Shown here: piece by piece, positions 22,741-38,849 of the stretch
Layout: each line of letters opens with the position of its first letter
How positions within the stretch are numbered: the first letter of the stretch is position 1
Assembly (NCBI GenBank): GCA_907165135.1
Contig: OU015570.1
Coordinates: 558,001-622,000 of the forward strand
DNA: 64,000 nt
Direction: 5' to 3'
From: Oikopleura dioica
Taxonomy: Eukaryota > Animalia > Chordata
Notes under the pieces: model-generated
Told to the model about the DNA's origin: nothing
Database searches by the model: none
What the model saw: the letters and a program-made list of their open reading frames with translations, nothing else
Translations under genes and position numbers: made by a program

Positions 22741-25050
22741 CTCAAAGTGTCATCAGTTTGACGAATATAGACTATATTTTAGACTTACAGTTGACTCGCA
22801 AAATTTGGACCCGCACAATTCGGCCCTTCTTTCGAATTTGGCGAAAATTAATGAAAATCGCTCAATTAGCCATCTATGTGAATATCAGTCAAATTTGCTT
22901 GCTCAAACGTATTTTGTAAGATAACTTTACGAGAAAAATGCTATTTCTTACTCTTTTTCTTATAAACACGTCGAATTTACGGGGATAATTGTGCGAGTTA
23001 ACTGTACGTCAATTCGGTTCTACGTTGGTTTAAATTTGTTCGTCAGCTTGGTATCACCGAATCGATCAGACATATTTGCAAAAATCATTTCACGATATTC
23101 TTCTCAACATGAAAAGATGGTCAGTTTTTACGAGCCAGATTGACCCAAAATTGTCTTATCATCATGTCATCTCTCTACGATCTAAACTTTTTATCATTGG
23201 AATGCTCATATGCTCTCATCATACTGCGATCTGACGTAGATTCATCAAAAAATATGAACCTCGCAAAACCGCATGTTTAATATTGATATTGATAATTCTT
23301 ATCATTGCTTTGCGATTCTGAAAAAAACGATTATTGACAGTATATGATTCAACTTCTACAACAAGATAGCCGTCAATGCCTTCAGAACTGTGAGCACAAC
23401 TGACCGATGAAAATCCACTTCAGTATTGTTGATGATCATCTTAATATTTCTCCCATGTCTTTTAGCTATGCAAGATCGATTGTTCATCGAGTTGAAATAG
23501 ATCTTATAATGGTTCTTATGTCCAAAATATAATCTTCTTTAAATACGGTTTATGTTAACAGTGTCTCGAGCGCGAGCACGCCCTCTGAGCTAAAGAAAAA
23601 TATAAAAAAAATTAAAATATTTAGAATCATTTTAATAAAGGGTATTGTCATCGCTCTTTACAAAGTATCAAATTTTTAATCTGAGTTGATTTTTAGAATC
23701 CTCATGAAATTCTGAACAAAAAAGTCCTTATGACCTTTTTCTCTCTTTCAACCGGTTTCCCGGAAATTGCGACTAAAATTGGCGAAATTTAATGCATTTT
23801 GCCCAAAAGCCAAATTTTGACCATTTTTAGAAGTTTCCGAGGGGCTTCATATGACAAATTTTTAGAAAGCTTATGTTCAGGGCTTCAAACTGGTATATAA
23901 ACGTCGGAGTTTGGGCATGCCCTCAGGGCAATTAAGGAGGTTGTTTCGGTCAAAAATGGGTACTATCGATTTTCGAAAAAATTTTGTAAGAAAAAATAAT
24001 TAACCCGATAACGAGAGCGGGAGGTTTTTCGGATATACAGTCAGGGCTTGCAACTTCTGGCCTTGCAATTACACGGTTTTTGGCGGAAATCCCGAAAATT
24101 TATGCATTTTCATAAAAAGGCATGATAAATATTCAATTTCTATCAAAATTACATTTTTAACTATGAGAATAGTATTTTTTAGAAGAAAATGATATTATGA
24201 CTAAGAATCGAAGTTTTCTAGAACATGGTGTTTTTGTTATTTTTGGCGACATTTTGCGACATTCGGCGACATTCGGCGACATTCGGCGACATAGTCAGTG
24301 TATGTTGGGATCAGTCTATGAGACGGACCCAATGTACTCTCGTCCTGGGCCACCACCCTTGATCTATTTTATGATCTTCTTGATAAGCTTCGCTACCTCC
24401 AACTCTTGACTAAGTATAATAAACTAGAGAGTTGGTGTGTTGATCCAAAAGGGGTCGTCAAAGACGATCCCATCATTGGTGACTGAACCCTTTACGGCCG
24501 ACGTCCCAGTGAAGAGAGCGGCGGCGTCCAGAAACATGTCAGTGGAAACTACAGTCAGCGGCTGCGACAACGAAATGAGTCACCATCTTGAGGGGGACCG
24601 ATCACCTTCCTGGCATAACTCAATGCACAAGGACTCGTTCGCGTGTCGAAATAAGAACATCAGCCTTAACTACGACAGTATCAACACCATCAGCCACTAC
24701 GACAAAGTCGACAACAACATCAGATAACTTGGAAATTGCAAAAGCGGCTATTCTGCCACTTCCCTAGCCGCCTTTTCAAAATTCGAGAATTTCACGACGA
24801 TCGACACAGGCGCCGCACCTTTCGCGAAGATTCGAAATTTTCTGCTGATCTTGACCGGCGTCATAAAATTCTAGGTTCTTTATCGAATTTTATATCCCAG
24901 CGCAGCTGACGAGACCATAAAGCTACACACATCAAGCAAACCGCTGGTCATAAAAGTTCGAGAAAACACCAAGGTCAACAACATCGGCTGATAAAATGGA
25001 ACCGAGCCGCGCCGACTCAAAGTGAAGTACACAAGTCAAGTCAAGAGAAT

Positions 25051-25479: not shown

Positions 25480-26182
25480 ATTCCCGCTAAGTGGTGCAAT
25501 GAAAATGGACAAATGAGGAAACAATAATTCGACAAAGAGCTCACAAAAAGAAGGGATTATGACTAGTTCAAAAGAGAAGAAGGAAGAGTTGATTGGCCAG
25601 GGATCAGGTGGATGCCTTAACCTACACGGAAGACGCACGTGTGCAAGGCCTAGCTTGAAGGACTCAGCTGGTTGTAAAGATTCAACCGTACGGCCGAAGA
25701 GAGTAGGGATGCCAACGTCCAGACGTGACCCGCGGAGGGAGTCCGCGGCGCCGAGAATGCAAGGAAGGGCCAACCTAGGGTCCGGCATGATTAGGACCAA
25801 AAATTAAATTTCAATAAAACTTCACGATTCCACAAATTCGACCCCAAGAATTTCAATTCCGGTCACTGATTCTTCAAAAAACCTCCGATTCAACCCTTTT
25901 CAGGGCTTTAATGAAAATTTGAATGGAGAGCCAAGTGCGCTCTGATTGGTCAGCTCCGCCTAGCGATTTTTATTACTGCAACGATCCCCCCTTGGTGGCT
26001 CAAATGTTAGCGCTCTCGCTTGAAAAGCAAGAGGTGGTGAGATCGATTCACCGAAAATCAAAAATTTTTTTTCATTATTTTTCATTATTTTTTTCATAAT
26101 TATTGAAAAATTTTAATTTTCGTTATAAGAAAAAAAAAGATTTCTCAGATGATTACCATAACAAACAAAGAAATTGGAATTA

Positions 26183-26581
26183 CAGTTAATTATGGAATTT
26201 TTGGACATTTTTTGTCCCAAGATTTTCGCGAAAATGTCCATAAATTTGATACACGCGGCCAAAAAAAATATCCCATCCAAATCGCTTAAAAAATTTTTTT
26301 TGAGAAAAATCTCCATCATTCTTTGTTTAATCCTTCTTCTAAAGACAAAAAATGTTTAAGGGGTACGAGATCAACCTTCAATCTTATCTTTCTCAAAGAA
26401 AAAGTAAGATTTTAATATGAAAAAACTTCATATCTGGCAAAAATAACAGAAAATTTAAAAATACGGCGCAGAAAATGTCCAAAAATTTGATACGGGCACT
26501 TTTGAAAAGTGTCCCAAGAAAACCCCATAAAATAGCAAAAATGTCCAAAAATTTGATGTCCAAAAATTCCATAAAAAACTG
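26183..26581. mobile_element. Tc1/mariner-like MITE with TA TSD
   Basis: ta|cagttaattatggaatttttggacat ... atgtccaaaaattccataaaaaactg|ta. Confidence 0.75.
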
Positions 26582-26603
26582 TATTTTCATTTTTACGCAA
26601 ACG

Positions 26604-26770
26604 GGTGTGGGTGGGGTTGGGGACAAAACTAAGACTGATCACCTCAGAGTTAAATGCCTTTGTCAAGCCCCTTAAAGTTAATAATCAAGGAACGGGGCTG
26701 AGACGGCCCGAAGGGCCGTCAAGCCCCTTAAAGTTAAAAATCAAGGAACGGGGCTGAGACGGCCCGAAGG
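26604..26770 (+). repeat. 59-bp tandem unit with GC-rich hairpin GGGGCTGAGACGGCCC-GAA-GGGCCGTCAAGCCCC
   Basis: About two units here; family copies at about 20320-20420 (-), 36697-36801 (-), 51384-51570 (+) and 60330-60420 (+). Confidence 0.8.
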
Positions 26771-27427
26771 CTTATTATTTCGACAAGCTTGACGATATTT
26801 CTGTAATGGTTTTGCAACCTATACAAATAAGTAAACACAAGAGAAATATACAGACAACTGAGCAAAGTTGGCTGTGTATAAAAAGAGTAAAGTTTTGAGC
26901 TTTTATTTGATCTTATCTCTGAGCGAGCAAAAGTGAGAATGACTGTGAGAGAGATGGTGAGCGGTTTTTATAGTTTTTCAAATTTTCGGGTTCCCAGTAG
27001 ATTAATCGGCTGTTATTCGATCGTATCGTTTTCATCGGATTAATTGAACATTAACGTAATAATTCGTCACCAACGGATTTTGTCACTTGGAAAAGGAATA
27101 ATTCCATTTTAGCGGATTAATCGGATTTCGAGCATCAGGACGTGAGAATAATTTGAAGAGCGGCGTTTTAAAACGGATTATTTGGTTTTTCAGGAAGGGC
27201 GCGCGTTTTAGAGTCGATTATTTCGCCAGCGCTAGTGCGCCATCATTTTCACTTACGCGCCGTGCTCGCGTGGCAAGCTTTGCTTTGCCCCGCGGCGTGA
27301 TCGTAATTAGAGCAATTCTGTAAAACCACTACATATTCTTCCCTCTTCTTTTTGAGCGGAGCGTTCTGGTAAAGTTTGAAGAAGGAGCGGTTTTCAGCAA
27401 GTAGGTTCTTTGAAGATTTGAGCATCT

Positions 27428-28129
27428 TCAAAGAAGATTTCCATGAAAGAAGGAGTCGAATGCATCAGAAGTTGCATCATTGACAAGATCGTATTCACGA
27501 GCGGGGGAATTCCAACGTATGTCCAAATTTACTTGCCCTGAATTGTTGAGCGGAGCTTCAGGGGGTTGGTAGACTACCAGGGCAGTCTCTTGAGCTACAA
27601 GGCAATATTTCTGGCATTTTTCAATAAAGAAAGCGAAATGGACATTGGAGAGGAGTTCAACTTCTTTCAGATCGGAGAAGTTAAGGTTGTCCCAGGCGAT
27701 TCTTCTGTACATGAAATGTTTGACAAAAGATTCGCGAACTTTGTCAGCTAGCTGAAGTTTTCCTTCTCGTGAGGTCTCGAAGTTGAGAAGGATTTTCATC
27801 GTGAAGGCAGTTTTCTTTGTCCATAAAATTATATCATTTGGACGAGGTTCTCTTTCGTAAGAGATCCAGACATTGGTGAGCTTTTCGAGGTCAATTTGAG
27901 CAGCAAAGTTGTTGTAGAACTCGTAACCTTTGCGAGCAGATTCCTCGACGATTCTTATGAGCTGGATTGTCTTTTCGCAGAACAGATATCGAGTGTCAAT
28001 TTCGAGCGGGAGCATTTGAGGTATGACGTATCTCAGGAAATTGGTTTTCAGATCACCTGTTGGTTTGAAGTTATGACAGATTTCGTTATATTTTGAATAC
28101 TTCCGGTTTTCTACTTGTCTCTGAGCCAT
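27428..28129 (-). CDS. Intact 233-aa orphan ORF downstream of a Gypsy integrase tail
   Basis: ATG-initiated, uninterrupted; no transmembrane segment or known motif seen. Confidence 0.55.
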   Translation of the reverse strand: MAQRQVENRKYSKYNEICHNFKPTGDLKTNFLRYVIPQMLPLEIDTRYLFCEKTIQLIRIVEESARKGYEFYNNFAAQIDLEKLTNVWISYEREPRPNDIILWTKKTAFTMKILLNFETSREGKLQLADKVRESFVKHFMYRRIAWDNLNFSDLKEVELLSNVHFAFFIEKCQKYCLVAQETALVVYQPPEAPLNNSGQVNLDIRWNSPAREYDLVNDATSDAFDSFFHGNLL

Positions 28130-28884
28130 TTTCGATCTCTTGCGAGTGGCGTTTTTCTCGGAAGCGGAGGCGAAAGAGCATTTTTTCGATCAACGAATCA
28201 GGAAATTGAGCGCTTTTACGTAAGATTCAAGAGTCGGGAGGCTTGCATACTCTTCCCTCTTTTTTTTGAGCTTTTGAGTCTTCTGAGTGAACAGTGTTTG
28301 AGCGAATTATTTGAGCAAACGATTCTTAGAGCGAACAAATTTGAGCTGAATCGTCTCTTTGAGCAACTTGATCTTGATCGTTTTAGCAGATGAATCCATG
28401 AGCGAGCAGAATCATCTTTAAGAAACTTGATCTTGATCGTTTGAGCAGATGAATCCATGAGCGAGCAAAATCATCTTTAAGAAACTTGATTATGAATTAT
28501 CTGAATGTGAAAAAGCAACTGCACGCATTGCTTCGCATCTTTGGAGGAGTGGACCAAGGTTCAGAAAAGCGGTGTCCATCGTGTGCGCAATTGATAGACA
28601 CATTAGCTGGGTTATGAGAACACAAGTCCAAAGAGGCCTGTATGAAACTTCTGCACAGCAAATGAGCGGAACTGGATTCCCTTTGATCGAGCGAGCGGGG
28701 ATGACTTCGAGCTTTGAAGTGAGCCGATCCAGTGTGCATAAACATTGCCGAAGTTTATGATCCAATATTTGAGCTTCAGGTTAACCTTTTGAGAACAGGA
28801 CTTTTTATCACAGATTTTGAGCGAACTTCGTAAACAAGTGTGAACGTGAGCAGGAACAGGAGCATAAGTTTAATGGCTTGATCA

Positions 28885-29200
28885 TCATCGTCGTGAGCGA
28901 AGGCGATGTTTCCATTTAGGAGTTTGAACTTGAAGTCCATCATCTCTATCAACAGGCTCATGTTGATCTTTATGAGGGCTTCTGATACTTTGATCTTCTT
29001 TCGTATCATTATGAGCAGGAACTTGAGCAAGATCTTGATCGAGCTGATCTTCTTCCGCTTTTTGATCAGTCTTTACTTTGACGACAAACTTTGTTTGATT
29101 TTCAGCCGTTTTGAGTCGGAGCGGTCGGATCAGGCTGATGTGTCGTCGATACTCTTTCTTTGTAAGCGGGCACTTGACATTGTAACTATCCTGCATGGTA
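28885..29200 (-). pseudogene. Gypsy integrase C-terminal tail
   Basis: KKEYRRHISLIRPL and KWKHRLRSRR match RREYRRHINVIRPL and WAKRLRQR of ORF 54510-54968. Confidence 0.75.
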
Positions 29201-29639
29201 TGTAGCAGGTGTAGCATGCAGCAGCGTTCAAAAAACGTGTAGCAAAGGGTAGCTTGCTACATTGCTACATTTTTCTGGGGGTGAAAATTTTTGTTCGCTT
29301 AAAGAAAATTCTAGAGCAGATTTGTTATTATCGACTCCGAAATTCAGCAGAAAATTTTCGTGAAAAAGCAACAATTTTGTTCTAGAATGCAATATTTCAA
29401 AAAAAAAAACGTGACAAGAATACATTTTACAGGAATATCTGTCGTAAGAGACGATTTATCAGCTTCATTGTATTTTGAACGTCTCTTTTGATACCTGACA
29501 GTGTTTATTAGCTAAGAAGTAATCTAGTTTGACCTTAAAAATTTTGCGAAAAAATATTTTTTATGTAGGAAGTGTAGCATGTAGCAGCGATTTTTCTGAG
29601 GCGATGTAGCACATGTAGCATGTAGCAGCAATATATTGC

Positions 29640-30007
29640 TACATTTTGAACCCTGCCTACAACCGTTTTTAGTCTCTTCCTGGATGAATTCAAAGCTCGA
29701 AGAAAATCTGCAACGTAATATCCATCAGTTGCTTATGCCCATTGTTAATGTTTTGAAGTGGACCGAAGATCTGACTGTATTTAATGCCCTATTGAAGCTC
29801 TGCTCTGACCACCAAATAAAGGAGCTCGCCCTGCCCCTATCATCCACTGCCTCCGGTTGGAAAGAAGATAAAAGAAAAAACGAAGCACTTGAATTGCTTT
29901 CTGCCTCTTTTCCTGAGATTGAACCTGTTTATTCTCCTGAATTTCAATTATTTCGACCTGAACATATGATATGTTACATATCCCTGTCTGTACAAATAGA
30001 AGCTTGA
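29640..30007 (+). CDS. 3' exon of an unidentified host gene, 5'-truncated at a tgtagca-repeat element (about 29200-29640)
   Basis: About 120 open codons ending in TGA, convergent with the zinc-finger gene 110 bp away. Confidence 0.4.
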
Positions 30008-30116
30008 AATAAGTTGAAAAAATTTATTTTCATTTTACAAAATGGCGGGAATAGCTTGAAGTATTGACCTCTAGCTTGAGATCACAGGCTTACAGTACAG
30101 TAAAATATAGTAATAG

Positions 30117-30930
30117 CTACACAACGAGTAAATTAGCGTCATTGGGAAGGCGGTAGATGATTTTCACAGATCTGAGCGTACTGATCGCAACTCGTTGAGC
30201 TCGGCGATCTCGGTAGTTGTTTTGCTTAGGCAGTTTTTTGCTGTGGTCGCAGCAGCCTAAAATATGATTAATAAGGAAACATGAGTTTCGAAAATACCTT
30301 GGTAAATTGATTTGTGGCAAATGACTCCCTCTTCTGTGGAAAATTTCTCTCCGCAGTCTCGACAGGAGTAGATAAGGGGTCCTTTGTCCATATGGGCACG
30401 GCGGTGTGCGTCGCGTTGCTTGAAACTCTTGAATGTATTTGGACAGAGCTCGCATTTGAAGGGTCCGTGGCCGATGGCCTTGTGTATTCGCAAACCGACA
30501 CGAGAATCGAACATTCTTGGGCACTATAGATACAATTAGACTCGCCTTTACAGATCGCTAATTACCTCCGAACATATCAAGTGAGCTCTCGCAGAGTGTT
30601 CCATTTGATCTTCCTTTGAAGTGAAGGTTTTGTAGCAGAACTTGCACTTGTAGAACTTCAAGCTAAGAGAAGAACTAATACTGAGTTTCTTCTCTCCAGC
30701 CTTTTTTTTGGCTCTTCTTTTGAGCTTGATTTTTCATTTTCTTTCGTGGACAAATTCAGCGGTTTCTTCTCCGCGACTGGCTCTGTTTCTTTGTCCGGTT
30801 TGGGCATGAATAGCGGGTCTATCTTGAGCACATCAATTGGGTCGTTTATGTCTTCAGCGATTCCCTTCGGGAGCTTGATCAGCGGCCCCACGTCCAAATC
30901 CATGGGCTCGATTTTGAATAAATCTGAAAC
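30117..30930 (-). CDS. C2H2 zinc-finger protein, multi-exon; probable 1-bp deletion in the T8 run at 30702-30709
   Basis: YKCKFCYKTF..QMEHSARAH, FKCELCPNTF..RDAHRRAH, YSCRDCGEKF. One extra A on the minus strand makes 30903-30570 continuous. True start uncertain. Confidence 0.8.
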
Positions 30931-31827
30931 AGAGTTTTACTCTACAATTTTCTTCCGAAGACGAAGGTCCTAATAGTCTGTAGATTGATCAATATTTGAA
31001 AATACTAACTCGGCCGTGTTGTGAGAACAGAGCGATAATTCTCAGGATTCCGACTTTAAAAATGATATCGTTATATCTTGTTTATTATTCTTTTGCGTTC
31101 TGGTAATATTTCTTTTACTCTTTTTTCTATTGGAGAACTTTCACACGTGAATATCTAACGTTCGAGTTTTCCGGCTCCTGACGTAATCAAAAGAAGCTTA
31201 TATTGTCTAATAGACAAGGATATACTTGAGAAATATTTTAAAGTTTCAACAAAACATCAGCTTTATTACTCGCGAGTTCGATTATGATTCGAGGGAACAA
31301 CTAATTATTTCGAAAGTCTTACCAATATTCATCTCTGGCGATATATTCTCTTTATTCGGCAATTTAACGTCGCTGAAATCTAGGGTCATGTTTTTTCTGT
31401 TTTCCAAAAAGACGATTGAGTATAATTTATAGTAGATTTTGAAGCTTAATTTTATGCTCCGCCGAATGCGCTCGAGCAGGCGGCTGGTGATCCTAATCTG
31501 CACGAAGTGGTTCGAGCTAGAAAGTCTGCGCCAACATTTTGGGCCTCCAAGTTTAGAAAAGGCCTTCACACGGAGATCTTCGATCGATAGGGTAGATTAA
31601 TAGTAGTATTTCTTGTTAATTTTCACTTCCGGTCTGATTCAGGGATGCTGGATTTCTCAATGGACGTCTCAATGTTTTATACATCCTACTAACTTTAGGT
31701 CCTTACTTCCTCACTCAGCATTTTAGATCGAGCGAACTCAACTTACTTTTAAAGTTACTAAATTAGTAACTTTTGCTATCTTCAGTACTTTTATGAAAAC
31801 TAAATTCGGCTTAAGATTTTTGATTGA

Positions 31828-32857
31828 ATGCGCGTTACATCTGTTTGTCGTAATCTACTGAACATAACTCGCACTGGAAACACAAAAATAATCGAGCTAG
31901 CGGACCTAAAAGGCCGAAATGCCCTTGGAATTGATATGCTCAGGAAAGGATTATAATCGCAAAATAGAATGAGCATTCAGCTCTATAAACAAGCCAAATC
32001 CTTATAGAGAGCTCAACGAAGCGTTAAGGTATTTTTGTCTAAATATTATTGACTGTTATGTCAATACTTTTTAGTGACGATTTTAGCGATTACCGATCGA
32101 TTGTGATAAGATCAGCTCATCCTAAAATTTTCTCGCCGGGACATAATGTAGCGGAACTAAAGAATTTCGAACTTCATCAGCAGTTTTTCGGAACATGTAA
32201 AGAAGTTATGAAGAAGATAAGGGAAGTGGATGTGCCTGTGATTGCTCAAGTTACAGGGCTTGCTGTTGCTGCTGGAGCTCAACTTGCAATCGCAGCAGGT
32301 GGTAGACACTCATGTCTTCGACTTTTAATGATTCTTAAGATATTACGATTGCATCTGAAAACGCCAAGTTCAGCGTCCCCGGCGCAAAAACCATCGGGTT
32401 ATACTGCCACTCACCCGCGGTTGAACTTGCCCGCGCGGTACCTCGCAAGATTGCGATGGATTTACTTGTTACTGGAGATTTTCTGGAGGCAAGCGATGCG
32501 TATCGAGCTGGAATGATTTCCCGATTAGTCGGCGATTATGATGCGTGTGTTGCTGCTGTGGAAGGTTCGTTTTATTGTCGTGTATCGAGCTTATCTGGAA
32601 CATAACTACTATAATAAAATACATGACGCTTTTCAGATGTGATCAACAAAATTGAAAACACCTCTCGAAGCGTCCAAGCACTTGGAAAACAAAAGTTCTA
32701 TGACCAAGTTGATCTACCGATTCAAGACGCCGCAAATTTGATGGAAAACGCAATGTACGAGAATCTTCAACTAGCGGACACACAAATAGGAATCAACTCT
32801 TTCATGGAGAAGAAAAAGCCGCAGTGGACCCATTCTAATGCAAAACAAGACCCCTAA
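31828..32857 (+). CDS. ECHDC3: Enoyl-CoA hydratase domain-containing protein 3-like, intact, 268 aa; exons 31828-31943, 32008-32028, 32075-32298, 32340-32564, 32637-32857
   Basis: Crotonase motifs RNALGIDML, FSPGHN, PVIAQVTGLAVAAGAQL, GLYCHSPAVELARAVPRKIAMDLLVTG; exon phases are consistent. Confidence 0.88.
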
Positions 32858-33012
32858 GTTAGGGGCCCTAACTTTTTCCACTGTTCAGATTTTCTTTGAT
32901 TTGGAGACATACAAGAGTGCGATAACTTTCATAATCGAGCTCTGAATTGATCAGAAATCGACGATTTCTTCATTTTTCAAAATGCAATGTGTGACTTTGG
33001 CTGTCTGTTAGA

Positions 33013-33388
33013 ATGCTAAGGGCGGGTCGGGCATTATCTCGTCGTCTGACGTCGAATCTTCAAGGATTCCATGTCGTGAACCAATTCGAAGTAGACGATT
33101 TGAAATTGAAAGTTACCGAGCGAGTGCACCAAGAAAGCGAAGCCAAATGGACGCACATTGATAAACAGGGCGAGACGGAAAAAGTCTTTAACATTTGCTT
33201 CCGCACCGTTCCTTTTACCGACAACGGTGTCGCTCACATTCTAGGTAATTTTGAACAATTAGAGCATGTTATGATTAATTCACTTAGAGCACCTTGTTCT
33301 GTGTGGATCAAAGAACTTTCCCGTCCGGGATCCATTTTTCAAAATGATCAACCGCTCGCTTAATTCTTTCATGAATGCAATGACTGGA
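33013..33388 (+). pseudogene. PITRM1: 5' fragment of mitochondrial presequence protease (M16C); exons 33013-33244 and 33288-about 33388
   Basis: Arg-rich presequence, [40 protein letters not shown] (inverted HXXEH); cut off by Gypsy sequence. Confidence 0.9.
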
Positions 33389-36300
33389 GCATCTGCATGA
33401 GCTGTTGACTCCCAGCATGAGCCGTGATCGTATGCAGATATTGAATAAATTCATCAGCAAGAGAACTTGGCAGAACGAGCCGATCATTTGAGTAGAGCAC
33501 ATTGTCTTTGAGCTTGAATTGTTTCAAAGAATTGTTGATTTCGAACTTGACAATGAGATTTTTCGTCTTTGAGCAGGATCGTTGAGCGAGAGCCATTTCT
33601 TTTGAAGTGAACGAACGATTTTCAAAAGAAAATAGTACATCATCTTGAGCGAGAGAGTGGACTGCAAATATCGTCTCAGCGATATCAAAGAAATCTTTTG
33701 CTTCATCCTCCAAGTCGGAGCTTTTTGATCTTGGAAGGCGTGAGAAGTAGTCAGCTGAAGCCATTTCCGGACTAGTTTCACTTTTATGAATGATGTTGAA
33801 GTTGAACCCGAGGAGATAATTGTAAACATTGCTTAATTTTATGTCGAGCTTTGACTGTCGAGCTTCTCGGAACAAGTAGAGCAGTGATTTATGATCGACG
33901 TACGCATCAAATTCGGTGTTGAGCAAATAATATTCGAAGAACTGAATACCCCAACAGAGCGCAAATAATTCTTTGATACGCATCGGCCGTTTCAGATCGG
34001 GCCCTTGAAGTTGTTTACTGAAGTACCCAAGTGCAGCGAGCGAGCCATTTTGAATTTGATAAAGGGTTCCACCGACCGCGAATCCTGAGGAATCTGTCAC
34101 AAGGACGAGCTTTGATCCAAGTTTGAAGTGAGCTAGGGTCGGTTCCTTCAGAAGTTTGTGTTTGATCGTTTCGAATGCCTTTTGATGCGTCTCAGTCCAT
34201 TGGTAATCTACCTAAGCGGAGGTGAGTCTGTAGAGCGGAGCAAGGATCTCACTTTCTTTTTCAATATATTTTATATTGAAGTTGATCATTCCAAGGTATC
34301 TCTTGAGTTCGGCTTTTGTCTCAGGTGGATTCATCTTCTCGATCGCTTCGATATGTTTCTTGAGTGGCTTAATTCCAGAGGCAGTCACACGATGTCCAAG
34401 AAAGTCGATCTCATTACTTGCGAGCTGGCACTTTTTCGCACTAATTATGAGCCCATAATCCAAACACGTTTTGAAGACAAACTCGAGCGACTTGAGATGT
34501 TCTTCCCAGCTGGAGTCAATGATGACGAGATCATCAATGTAGAGCGTGATTGATGGGTGGTTCATAAGCGTCATCATGATGCGACTAAATGCAGCAGGTG
34601 CATTGCAAGAGCCATAGAGCATTCTGTTTGCTTGGAAGTGTTCGTTGTTGTATGAGAAGGCCATTTTGTGAGCATCACTTTCATTGATCAGGACTTGCCA
34701 ATAGCCTCGGAAAAAGTCTACTGAGCTGATGAAGCATTCTTTTCCTTCACTTAGGCGTTTGCCGATCCTTGTGAAGACTGTTTGCATGTGCGGAAGTGGG
34801 AAGCGATCTTTGATGAGAAGTGAATTGATTCCTCGAGCGTCGAGACTGATTCGAATTGTTTGATCAGGTTTTCGAAGGAGGATCAAAGGAATGTTGTGAG
34901 CGGATTGGGTTTTCTGAATAACTTTGAGCTGTTTCCATTTCGTCATCGCTTCATCGACTTGATCTTGAGAGTGAATTGGTATTGGTCTTGGAGGCTGGTG
35001 GGAAGTTTTGGATTCATCGTAGAGCGGAAGAGTGTAACGAAATCCAAACAGTCGTCCAAGATCGTCCGAGTCCATTGAGAAGCTAAGCCGATATTTGTAA
35101 ACAAGTTCATCCAATTGAGCCTTTTGAACATTGTTTGCTGACCCGTATGATCCGTTGCTGACCCGTTTGAAATTGATCCTTTCGGCGGCTTGTGAACGTC
35201 TATGGAGGAACTGATCGTATTCCTCCTTTTGAGAGCCAGATTTTCTATCCACCTCTATAATTCCTGTGAGAAGCAGATCTGAGGAATTTGGATTGATAGT
35301 GGGGATAAATTTTCCTAGGAGAGTTATCGAGCTTTCTCCAATCGTTACTTGCTTGAGCGTATCCATGCCAAGAATGATCGGGCACGAAAGGTTTTGAACA
35401 ATGAGCGGGTTGAGTTTGATCTTGAGTGGCGATCCATTTCTTATCAGATTTGCTTCGATCGTGGAGCTGAGCGTACTGACTTGAACGATTTCTGAATTCG
35501 CACACTTGAGCCTTATATTCGAGGGTGTTTGTTTGTTGACGTGAGCTGGAAGTAGGTCGATTACATCGGAGCGGAAACATGTTCGACTACATCCGGTGTC
35601 AATAAGAGCGGGAAAGGTTAGTCCGTGGAGCGTGATCTTGACATATTTGAGCGAGGTCGGTGCAAAATGAGCATATTTACACGTTTCGGTGACCTTTGAT
35701 AGTCATTCCTCGTTTTTGATCAATTTTTACGTGAGCGGGAACATCATCGGAGTGGATGTATTTGCACTTTGATCCAAATTTACACGATCCCCTTTTGACA
35801 AAGCTGATGCAGAATCCGTCGATCTTCGAAGTGTCGATTCTGTTTCTCTTCCGCTTTGGCTCTTTTGGCTTTGGCTGATCCTTTTTGACTGCTGAAGACA
35901 CAATTTCTTTCAATTTTGAGCAGAGCATTGAAACTTCTGAGCTTTGTGTCGGTGAGGATTCCTCTGCAGTGAATATATTTTCTTTCTTGAAGAACGATCT
36001 TTCAAGTTCAGTGCTGCGCTGAGCGATGTTTTTGAGAGTCAGCAGCGATTTTTCCCTTCTGAGCAACTCACATAATCGCGGTTCTTGAGCGTTGATGAAC
36101 CTTTCGCAAATTATGCTTTCGTCGGCTGGATCAAGGGTTTCTTTGCCGTATCCTTTCTTGAAGAAGGCGATGAGTAGGGTCCGTACACAAAAATTCTAAC
36201 TTTTTTGTTTCAAAAGCAAATCCTTTGAGAGTTTCAGGGGTAATTTATATGCCCTTGAGGATTGTAAAAACATAAATTTCCAAAAAAAAGAAAAAAGGGT

Positions 36301-37570
36301 TGATGAGATAATCGCATAAATAGGCTGAAAAAACTATTGCATAAGACTTTCAAAAGAATTAACTACATAAGTACATTTTTAGATAGCTATTTTTATTTTA
36401 ATCTTCAAGAAAAAAGTTTGAACACCGTCTGCAACATGCTCATTTTAAGAGAAGAAGATCAAAATTCTGCCTTCTTGCGCTGCGCTTGGCGCGCGGTGAG
36501 TCACTTTCCATATTTGGAAGTCGTAGGGTGGCCGCAGCGCAACGACACAATCAGAAAAATTTCAATTTTCATAGAAATATAAATTCTAATAAAAATAAAG
36601 TTTTTTTGAGAAATAAGAAACAAAAGATAAATAAAATATTAAGAAAAAAAGATAAAAAAAAAATTTTTCTTTCAAAATTTAAAATTAAAAATAATGGGCC
36701 GTCTCAGCCCCATTCCTTGATTTTTAAATTTAAGGGGCTTGACAAAGGCCTGGAACTCTGAGTTGATCAATCTCAGTTTTGTCCCCAACCCCACCCACAC
36801 CCATTGTTTTTAAAATTCAAATTATCCCTGTTTTTATTTAAATTATGGTTTTTATCATAGATTATGAAAATAGTTTTTTTTTAATTTTCAATTAGTTCAA
36901 TTCCTGGCTCGAAAAAATCTTCCTAGAGCATATCTGACGGTTCTTTCGGTACACTCAGGCTTATTTAAAAAATTTGAAAAAATCTATTCTACCTTTCACC
37001 CTGGGTTTTGCGTGCTCACCCCGTATCATGCGCTCCCCTGCGTGACCGCGCGCCGCGCGCTGCATTCAAAATATCGGCAAAATTTACAGTTTTTTGTAAA
37101 TTTCGGACAGATGCATGCTCTGTTCAAACTTTTTAAAAAGGATTTGAAATGAGCTTGTCCCGCCGGTTATCCCAGTAAGATCAATTTTTCTGAACTCGGA
37201 ATGCAACCTGGTGAACACAAAAATCACCATTTTTAACCCTTTATATTTTCTCATCCCTTTTATTTTAGAGAAAGTCAAAAAAGCAAAAATCCTTATTTGA
37301 GCTATCTCTAAAACACATTTAAAAATAAAAAGGATTGGATAAGTATTTCGGGTACTTAATTTTTGTGTACGGACCCTAGCGATGAGCTTTGTGAGCGCCA
37401 TGAATTGTGATTCACTCCCACGTTGGAAGTTGTTGTACTGAAATTTGTAATGTTCGGCATCCTTTCCAAGGATGAGAGTGAGTTTGTTTTTGAAAAGATC
37501 CCAGCTTTTGAGCTCATCTGCTGAGATCGCTTCGATCAGTGCGCTTCCGGTCTCTTTAGTCAGTCTCTGA
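33389..37570 (-). mobile_element. LTR-less Gypsy gag-pol: gag (37570-35700, split by a MITE), protease, RT, RNase H, start of integrase
   Basis: ALIDTGCS; VDFFRGYWQ, YGSCNAPAAF, YIDD; TDSS..KELFAL..DHKSL..ADYFSR. One TAG at 34212. Confidence 0.93.
36175..37378. mobile_element. hAT-type MITE nested in gag
   Basis: 21-bp TIR TAGGGTCCGTACACAAAAATT and 8-bp TSD GCGATGAG; removal restores gag ...LTKLIAFFKKG.... Confidence 0.92.
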
Positions 37571-38127
37571 TATGAGTCATATGATATGACAAGGGATTAA
37601 TTTTTTTTAATCGAGGAAGAGCTTTTTCATCAACAATGACAAAATCGCAGAAGCTTAGAATAATCTTCCTTCAAAATTGACTCCTGAGAATGTCTTCCTC
37701 TTCAGCCAATCAGAGCGCGCTTCCTCAATTTTCATATAATGATAAATAATGGATAATATTCAAATGGACAGCACATAAAAACCTTGAATTTTTTAAGATT
37801 TTTTCTTGCAGATATGTGAATTTTCGGGCTGAATTTATCAAAATTTGGAAAAGAGAAGTTTGTGCAGCCATTATTAGTATAAAAAACCGAGAGAAATCGG
37901 CGATTCCGACACTGAATAAGAATATTGGCACTATCATTTTTTTGCCGTATTCGAGTCCCTTAAATCCCATAAGAATTTTTCTTAATACTTTAAGATTTTC
38001 GCTTTTGAAAAATTAGGTCCTCCGATCATGCCGGACCCTAGGCCAACCTTGCCGGTGGAGAACTGACAACTCTAGAAACCTGTCATGCTCGAGTAGAACG
38101 AAAGAAATTCGCGAAACATAAATCATA

Positions 38128-38331
38128 CCGCGATTGGCATTTCTGACTGACTGATTCTGAAAATAGCTTATCAACCAATCAAAATTTGACTCTGGTCTCC
38201 TTTATATGAAAATCCAGTCAAACCAGTCGACCAATCAGGAGCCATTACAAATCTGCTTTGTTTTAGCATGGAGAATTGTAACGGCTCATACACTGACTGG
38301 AAAATCAGTCAGTCAGATATGCCAACCGCGG
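38128..38331. mobile_element. Small MITE with internal CCAAT motifs
   Basis: ccgcgattggcatttctgactgactgatt is inverted with aatcagtcagtcagatatgccaaccgcgg; TA flanks. Confidence 0.65.
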
Positions 38332-38849
38332 TATATATAAATGTTGCCTCTGTTCACATCTCAATGCGATTCTCTCAGCTGTCTATCTGTTCTTTTCTTT
38401 CTCTTTTACCCCACCCCCGGAAGAGATGGGTATCATTTTCCCTCTATTGCACCTGATAATTATCGATTTCTCCCTATTGCACCCTCTGGGTGACCCTGGG
38501 GCGGAAGAATGTTGGGATCAGTCTATGAGACGGACGCAATGTACTCTCGTCCTGGGCCACCACCCTTGATCTATTTTATGATCTTCTTGATAAGTTGCGC
38601 TACCTCCAACTCTTGACTAAGATTCGGAAATAAATACCAAATTATAATAAACTAGAGAGTTGGTGTGTTGATCCAAAAGGGGTCGTCAAAGACGATCTCA
38701 TCATGTAAGCCCGATCATGGATTCATCTGCTCAATTGATTAACATCAAGTTGTTCAAAGACGGTTCTGCTCGCCGATAGAGCCGTCTGCTCAATTCCGTC
38801 AAAAACGTTAAATTAATTTCATAATAAACGTTTGAGCGGGTTTTTGGTT

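Follow-up and report, generated by a model that had tools for sequence, protein, structure and literature searches.

A block of host genes within a hAT-like MITE on the Oikopleura dioica Y-specific region: nested insertions and a probable repair-mediated duplication from an autosome

Introduction

Host DNA enclosed by the terminal inverted repeats (TIRs) of DNA transposons has been described in both animals and plants. For single-copy animal Pack-TIRs, Tan et al. 2021 infer a transposition-independent filling of gaps by end joining or template switching (PMC8277862), while plant Pack-MULE, Pack-CACTA and Pack-TYPE elements are short, often multicopy, and have their gene fragments joined directly to the arms (PMC8903248, PMC6379663), mobilisation having been recorded for Pack-CACTA (PMC8903248, PMC6379663). 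A further route for the relocation of genes is known from the Drosophila simulans clade, where autosome-to-Y DNA duplications occur on a repeat-rich Y with end-joining-biased repair (Chang et al. 2022, PMC8794474). Here, we describe a 64,000-nucleotide window from the chordate Oikopleura dioica, a tunicate (contig OU015570.1, positions 558,001 to 622,000), in which a 12.3-kb composite at 25776-38040 has the ends of a hAT-like miniature inverted-repeat transposable element (MITE), contains a Ty3/Gypsy retroelement and holds, inside the latter, a 3.72-kb block of host genes. The block is a DNA-level duplicate of a locus on chromosome 2 (chr2), and we consider that it probably arose through nested insertions and a repair-mediated autosome-to-Y duplication at a single site in the Y-specific region (YSR).

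The locus resembles the single-copy animal Pack-TIRs (PMC8277862) in being a single-copy arrangement of intron-bearing host DNA between non-autonomous TIRs, with a clear parent and with microhomology and filler at its borders, and in that the capture event was probably later than the transposition. It differs from them in that the filled break lay in a nested long terminal repeat (LTR) retroelement and not in the TIR element, and in that the parent is on another chromosome. Tan et al. require of a Pack-TIR an interior of 100-5000 bp that amounts to 80-120% of the parental length, and a fragment with the TIR element on its flanks (PMC8277862). Here the interior measures 10.8 kb, the host block makes up 3.72 kb of it (~35%), and the block is bordered by Gypsy and by a piece of a second MITE (MITE2), so that the locus does not qualify. 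With the plant elements it shares gene fragments within a frame of TIRs and a target site duplication (TSD) that holds no transposase (PMC8903248, PMC6379663). Matching TIRs and TSD, host DNA of unambiguous parentage and the lack of a transposase are all found; of movement after capture, in contrast to Pack-CACTA, there is no sign.

Like the Y duplications of the D. simulans clade (PMC8794474), the block keeps introns and intergenic DNA, lies in LTR surroundings, has junctions of the deletion and end-joining type and mixes open with degenerating gene copies, although the lineage here, a tunicate, has a Y-specific region of 2.9 Mb, and no amplification into a gene family has occurred. Ordinary nested transposon insertion accounts for the hallmarks of the other layers (8-bp TSDs in two cases, a TA TSD in a third and an LTR terminus with TG), but one layer is a three-piece templated patch containing host genes and not a product of transposition. 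The locus is a new example of known processes.

Genome searches covered the OKI2018_I69 assembly (64.28 Mb, 19 scaffolds), in which the window is C3:558001-622000; this assembly was built from Nanopore, Illumina and Hi-C data from a single male, and its authors describe the YSR as repeat-rich (PMC8008620). A protein search returned two public gene models for ECHDC3, Oidioi.mRNA.OKI2018_I69.chr2.g7471, on the 16,158,756-bp scaffold C5, and OKI2018_I69.YSR.g17051, on the 2,916,375-bp scaffold C3, and because these names place the two copies on chr2 and the YSR, we assign the parent and the window to those chromosomes.

A hAT-like MITE as the outer frame

The architecture of the locus, its junction sequences, its parental locus and the empty sites can all be observed directly. 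A perfect 16-bp TIR, TAGGGTCCGGCATGAT, occupies 25776-25791 on the forward strand and 38025-38040 on the reverse, and occurs only these two times in the whole window against an expectation of 0.02. It is flanked by two identical 8-bp copies of GGCCAACC, at 25768-25775 and 38041-38048. The surrounding DNA is a repeat with two paralogues, C5:15072319-26 and C3:1517687-94 (loci L015 and L016), which are empty sites with one uninterrupted GGCCAACC each. The initial annotation, which had proposed a Pack-hAT-like element that mobilised working host genes, was therefore right about hAT-type TIRs and a perfect TSD, and the empty site that it would look for exists twice over. Its statement that no transposase is enclosed also stands, since a genome-wide search for the hAT transposase domain PF05699 gave no match in the element interior (C3:583776-596040), and a Pfam scan of ten open reading frames inside the element found reverse transcriptase and RNase H as the sole transposon domains.

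The left arm (25776-26801, forward strand) is 93% identical to relatives at C3:2377238-2378611 and C5:4324099-4325259, both of which bear 8-bp TSDs, and contains 55-56-bp tandem repeats at 26662-26770; the right arm (37584-38040, forward strand) ends in the second TIR. Aligned to a reference copy of the family (L003), the arms meet at positions 718 and 697, so that the MITE, about 1.3 kb when uninterrupted, was broken at essentially one point with the loss of ~20 bp. Genome-wide the TIR is found 19 times. Four other copies are paired (889, 1161, 1374 and 3015 bp), each with a perfect 8-bp TSD of its own sequence, such that 8-bp duplications accompany five of five independent family copies, this locus included. 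The search for further elements and their cargo thus yielded four relatives of 0.9-3 kb, none with cargo.

Transposons of the hAT superfamily have a TIR consensus beginning YARNG, with which the TAGGG start of the outer MITE is consistent. The outer element is a member of a non-autonomous hAT-like MITE family, its superfamily placement being suggested by TSD length and the TAGGG terminus. No copy of the family contains a hAT domain. The genome-wide PF05699 search placed hAT dimerisation domains at 10 sites, and the three of these elements that were compared with the outer MITE (L017-L019) have no TAGGGTCCG ends and no similarity to its TIR or arms.

Several observations concern this family and possible sources of transposase. 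The genome has at least seven nearly identical open frames with a hAT dimerisation domain in a 177-residue stretch free of stops (C1:636914, 641782, 732634 and 737494; C5:13847453; C4:380299 and 393172), and these are candidate active hAT transposases. The 55-56-bp tandem repeat, present as two units here, has dozens of units at L005 (C3:2212600-2215614) and elsewhere, expanded relatives being found at C5:9639287-9642116, C1:4946697-4948691 and C5:7037897-7040162, and this variation in unit number explains the 0.9-3-kb size spread of the family. A second large element was considered from TIR matches at C3:1339541 (forward) and C3:1361957 (reverse) and was rejected, as the flanks differ (CAATAAGT versus CACTGCAG).

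A truncated Gypsy element within the MITE

Gypsy sequence at 26802-29192, 33384-36174 and 37379-37563 runs colinearly with complete Ty3/Gypsy copies from the YSR (L002, L011 and L012) at 95-98% identity, from which it follows that the two apparent Gypsy pieces are halves of one minus-strand element. All of the cargo listed by the initial annotation is present, namely a Gypsy LTR and 3' part (26802-29192), the gene block (29668-33388) and a stretch with Gypsy reverse transcriptase and RNase H (33389-37563); its description of an LTR-less Gypsy plus a separate 3' piece holds in that both stretches are Gypsy, and fails in that they form a single element that retains its 3' LTR. This LTR (26802-27335, reverse strand) is 97-98% identical to both LTRs of L002 and L011 and begins, on the forward strand, with TGTAATGG exactly at the MITE junction. 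As a canonical LTR end (TG...) coincides with the end of MITE homology, the Gypsy arrived by integrase-mediated integration and not by capture.

The internal region downstream of the integrase follows at 27336-29192 (reverse strand; 95-97% to L002, L011 and L012), and at 29192 homology to every sibling breaks off. Beyond the gene block the element resumes with pol and its upstream region (33389-36174, reverse strand), including RNase H (33372-34100) and reverse transcriptase (34215-35366); the order in the pol frame of L012 is RVT_1, RT_RNaseH, Integrase_H2C2 and rve, of which the window copy has reverse transcriptase and RNase H. The last segment kept (37379-37563, reverse strand) stops inside the internal region, and a filler of ~16-20 bp (37564-37583) joins it to the right MITE arm at the point where ~20 bp of the MITE are gone. 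This is hence a truncated member with one LTR only and no target duplication of its own, having lost its 5' LTR and ~1.3 kb of Gypsy, together with the ~20 bp of MITE, through deletion.

Two further insertions are nested in these layers. A 1.2-kb hAT-like MITE (36175-37378) lies inside the Gypsy, with a 21-bp TIR, TAGGGTCCGTACACAAAAATT, and an 8-bp TSD, GCGATGAG. In the left arm of the outer MITE, which resumes at 26582, sits a 399-bp Tc1/mariner-like MITE (26183-26581) with CAGT...ACTG ends and a TA duplication; its many genomic copies, mostly on the YSR, are 98-100% identical, which suggests a very young insertion and recent or ongoing mobilisation.

The gene block, its parent and its borders

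The gene block (29668-33388, forward strand) is a copy of chr2 C5:12370487-12374255 on the reverse strand, the alignment of 3695 bases showing 100 substitutions and 11 indels (97.3% identity), and genome-wide only the window and that locus match it. At chr2 the sequence runs on into exons encoding Peptidase_M16_C, M16C_assoc and PreP_C, giving a full-length PITRM1, and on the other side into more exons of an unnamed gene. Since the genes are complete on both sides there, the chr2 locus is parental and the Y block derived; the search for a parental locus with full-length PITRM1 that the initial annotation called for is thereby answered, and the window is not the only ECHDC3 locus. The copy has kept introns, intergenic DNA and genes of either strand, its alignment is colinear across introns, and the block is framed by neither a TSD nor poly(A) nor transposon ends. 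A DNA copy with introns retained and its outer genes cut mid-gene, as first described, is therefore what is seen, and the breakpoints first given, 29640 and 33389, fall within 30 bp of the measured borders.

What the block replaced can be read from the sibling Gypsy copies, in which the positions equivalent to 29192 and 33384-33387 lie ~857 bp apart; in L012 this interval encodes pol residues ~521-807, comprising half of Integrase_H2C2 and the entire rve core. In its stead the window has, from the left, the MITE2 fragment (29193-29655, forward strand; family TIR CAGGGTTCGAAATGTAGCA), which is missing ~65 bp on the left, TIR included, and has an intact right terminus, then a filler of ~12 bp, CCTACAACCGTT (29656-29667), and then the block, which begins ~5 nt within an intron of the unnamed gene and at its right end meets the Gypsy through a 2-bp GA microhomology. 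No source for the filler was found in the chr2 locus, the lost Gypsy segment or the flanks of other MITE2 copies, and a candidate origin at C5:9389404 (a 22-mer across MITE2 and filler with 3 mismatches) was rejected as a chance match, that locus having no similarity to MITE2. Loss of recipient DNA, a patch of several pieces, filler and microhomology together form the pattern of end joining or template-switching gap repair.

That the block lies entirely inside Gypsy sequence, behind a precise LTR/MITE junction, would also suit a non-autonomous Gypsy copy that had caught the genes elsewhere and then entered the MITE by retrotransposition with the help of proteins provided in trans. Such an origin would leave a donor Gypsy containing the block, but the genome has the block only here and at chr2, no sibling has MITE2 or the block at the corresponding position, and the C2H2 zinc-finger gene of the block, although on the sense strand of the Gypsy, keeps its intron; we judge this history very unlikely.

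The low divergence of one part of the block is an observation in its own right. Across a 0.93-kb tract (29988-30947), which takes in the entire C2H2 gene together with its untranslated flanks, 5 substitutions separate the copy from chr2 (0.5%), against 3.4% in the rest of the block (binomial p = 3e-9); this could reflect later gene conversion between Y and chr2 or a constraint of unusual strength that extends to non-coding DNA.

Support from sequencing reads

The assembly is haplotype-merged and Nanopore-based with a stated error rate of 1.3% (PMC8008620), and one could suppose that chimeric long reads led to an allelic chr2 haplotype being joined to YSR sequence. Runs of three studies, with one run possibly from the assembly's own sample, yield contigs identical to the window over indel-rich stretches specific to the Y: 31606-31856 at depth 51 in run X1, 31974-32140 at depth 71 in run X2, beside a chr2-type contig at depth 114, and 31606-31874 in run X3. 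Depth of the Y type is ~0.3-0.6 of that of the chr2 type, which fits a hemizygous locus. The initial annotation had named misassembly at 29640 or 33389 among the findings that would refute it, and at the left junction this is countered by a short-read contig from X3 (29626-29789, 164 nt, no differences) that bridges MITE2, filler and block. Loose contig ends behave as expected, those at 29668 and 33388 continuing into chr2 sequence and those at 29192 into intact Gypsy copies. The bridging contigs listed are short, a point in favour of an artefact, but Y-type variants recur in three studies alongside deeper chr2-type contigs, and junctions made of filler and microhomology do not look like abrupt read ends, so that of all the explanations weighed here an artefact seems to us the least credible.

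Proposed order of events

On the history that we favour, and think probable, a ~1.3-kb non-autonomous hAT-like MITE would first have entered an older repeat, creating the GGCCAACC duplication. A Ty3/Gypsy element would then have integrated within the MITE body, after which a deletion with short filler would have taken the Gypsy 5' LTR, ~1.3 kb of Gypsy and ~20 bp of MITE, and another hAT-like MITE and the Tc1/mariner-like MITE would have been inserted. Finally, the integrase region of the Gypsy may have suffered a double-strand break or a gap that was mended by end joining or template switching, the ~857 bp giving way to a MITE2 fragment, ~12 bp of filler and a 3.72-kb copy of chr2 DNA. We infer the repair mechanism and the order of the second to fifth steps relative to the first. 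Nesting in place calls for ordinary events only, and with these it explains why the LTR junction is precise, why there is one copy and why the block lies where it does. The outcome is a DNA-level autosome-to-Y duplicate in which ECHDC3 has kept an open frame, the C2H2 gene has suffered a frameshift and of the two outer genes only stubs are present.

Four points weigh against this reconstruction. The TIRs and TSD are perfect, yet at the observed divergence their 48 bp would be expected to hold only ~0.7 substitutions, so their decay is uninformative as a clock and the order of events cannot be dated by it. MITEs of hAT type with TAGGGTCCG ends were active after the Gypsy arrived (36175-37378), which leaves room for the composite to have been mobilised in its entirety at a later time. 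The target duplication that the Gypsy itself made disappeared along with its 5' end. Bridging by an independent contig is established at the left border of the block and not at the right, 33388.

On a true Pack-hAT reading, the composite would have been built elsewhere and then cut and pasted into GGCCAACC as a 12.3-kb unit by a hAT transposase acting on the intact TIRs, remaining mobilisable. In favour of this, the TIRs and TSD are perfect, the MITE family has produced 8-bp TSDs at four further sites, a related MITE did insert later than the Gypsy, and hAT dimerisation domains are present in the genome. Even so, the hAT-domain elements compared (3 of 10) share neither TIR nor arm sequence with the frame, other family members are 0.9-3 kb and empty of cargo, and the additional event is unneeded where nesting in place accounts for everything. 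The composite and its junctions are unique in the genome, and from a single copy nothing shows movement as a unit. Capture by the hAT element itself is not supported by the block, which adjoins Gypsy and the MITE2 fragment, has no contact with the hAT arms, sits in mid-Gypsy and has end-joining borders. We therefore regard mobilisation of host genes by a hAT transposon as unlikely, and retain nested insertion followed by repair as the preferred account.

State of the copied genes

The initial annotation spoke of an intact host gene island, and this description survives for one gene of the four. ECHDC3 (YSR.g17051; 31828-32857, forward strand) has a five-exon model (31828-31943, 32008-32028, 32075-32298, 32340-32564 and 32637-32857) with an open frame of 268 residues, in which all splice sites are common to the chr2 copy and the exons, taken in turn, correspond to ECH_1 positions 40-250. 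A frameshift from a 2-bp indel at 32336 was considered and rejected, as the indel falls in a 41-43-nt intron. Across the full model the Y and chr2 copies differ by 8 synonymous and 10 non-synonymous changes, for instance at 31844, 32084, 32110, 32446 and 32662, giving a ratio of non-synonymous to synonymous rates (dN/dS) of 0.36, a value from small numbers that includes the chr2 lineage and is compatible with constraint. The public 178-residue models confirm the last two junctions and differ between Y and chr2 at 5 of 178 residues. RNA run X16 (oligo-dT, probably from another O. dioica lineage) gave no reads on either copy at 95% likeness and is uninformative on expression.

Two observations on the ECHDC3 models may be added. 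Intron 1 (31944-32007) has an apparent non-canonical GA-AG pair in both copies, and the public models (chr2.g7471 and YSR.g17051) begin at an internal methionine, so missing exons 1 and 2 and half of exon 3 (ECH_1 ~1-90).

The remaining genes have fared worse. The C2H2 zinc-finger copy (30120-30936, reverse strand) has a 2-bp insertion in exon 1, T8 where chr2 has T6 near 30702, that shifts the frame and contradicts its listing among working genes. Most contig depth in runs X1 and X2 has the longer form, and because short-read contigs in two runs mostly carry it, the frameshift is probably real and not a homopolymer error. PITRM1/PreP is a 5' stub (33013-33388, forward strand) of exon 1 and part of exon 2, ~110 of ~1000 codons, cut at 33388 just past the HILEH motif, the remainder being on chr2 only. 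The fourth, an unnamed multi-exon chr2 gene without a match in a Pfam scan, is represented by its last exon (29670-30007, forward strand), in which a 7-bp deletion and a 1-bp insertion scramble the C-terminal ~10 codons.

Surroundings of the element

Outside the composite, the right flank contains a 210-bp MITE with 32-nt inverted ends (38125-38334) that is not in the paralogous empty sites. Direct repeats of 97% identity (24302-24476 and 38509-38704), 14.2 kb apart, enclose the whole element. The host repeat around it has only three genomic copies, 91% alike, and may be LTR-like or a tandem unit.

Conclusions

A frame of TIRs and TSD around host genes can mislead, and a Pack-type screen without dissection of the interior would score this locus as gene capture by a DNA transposon. 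Were movement as a Pack-hAT unit nevertheless true, it would constitute a vehicle bringing a retroelement and an open ECHDC3 paralogue onto a chordate Y. As reconstructed here, the locus offers one concrete route, with junctions at base level, by which the repeat-rich YSR of O. dioica may gain autosomal genes. ECHDC3 (YSR.g17051) is a candidate male-linked paralogue and, with a dN/dS of 0.36, possibly a retained, male-specific functional one. The main value of the finding lies in this possible male-linked paralogue of ECHDC3 and in the caution that it brings to screens for Pack-type elements.

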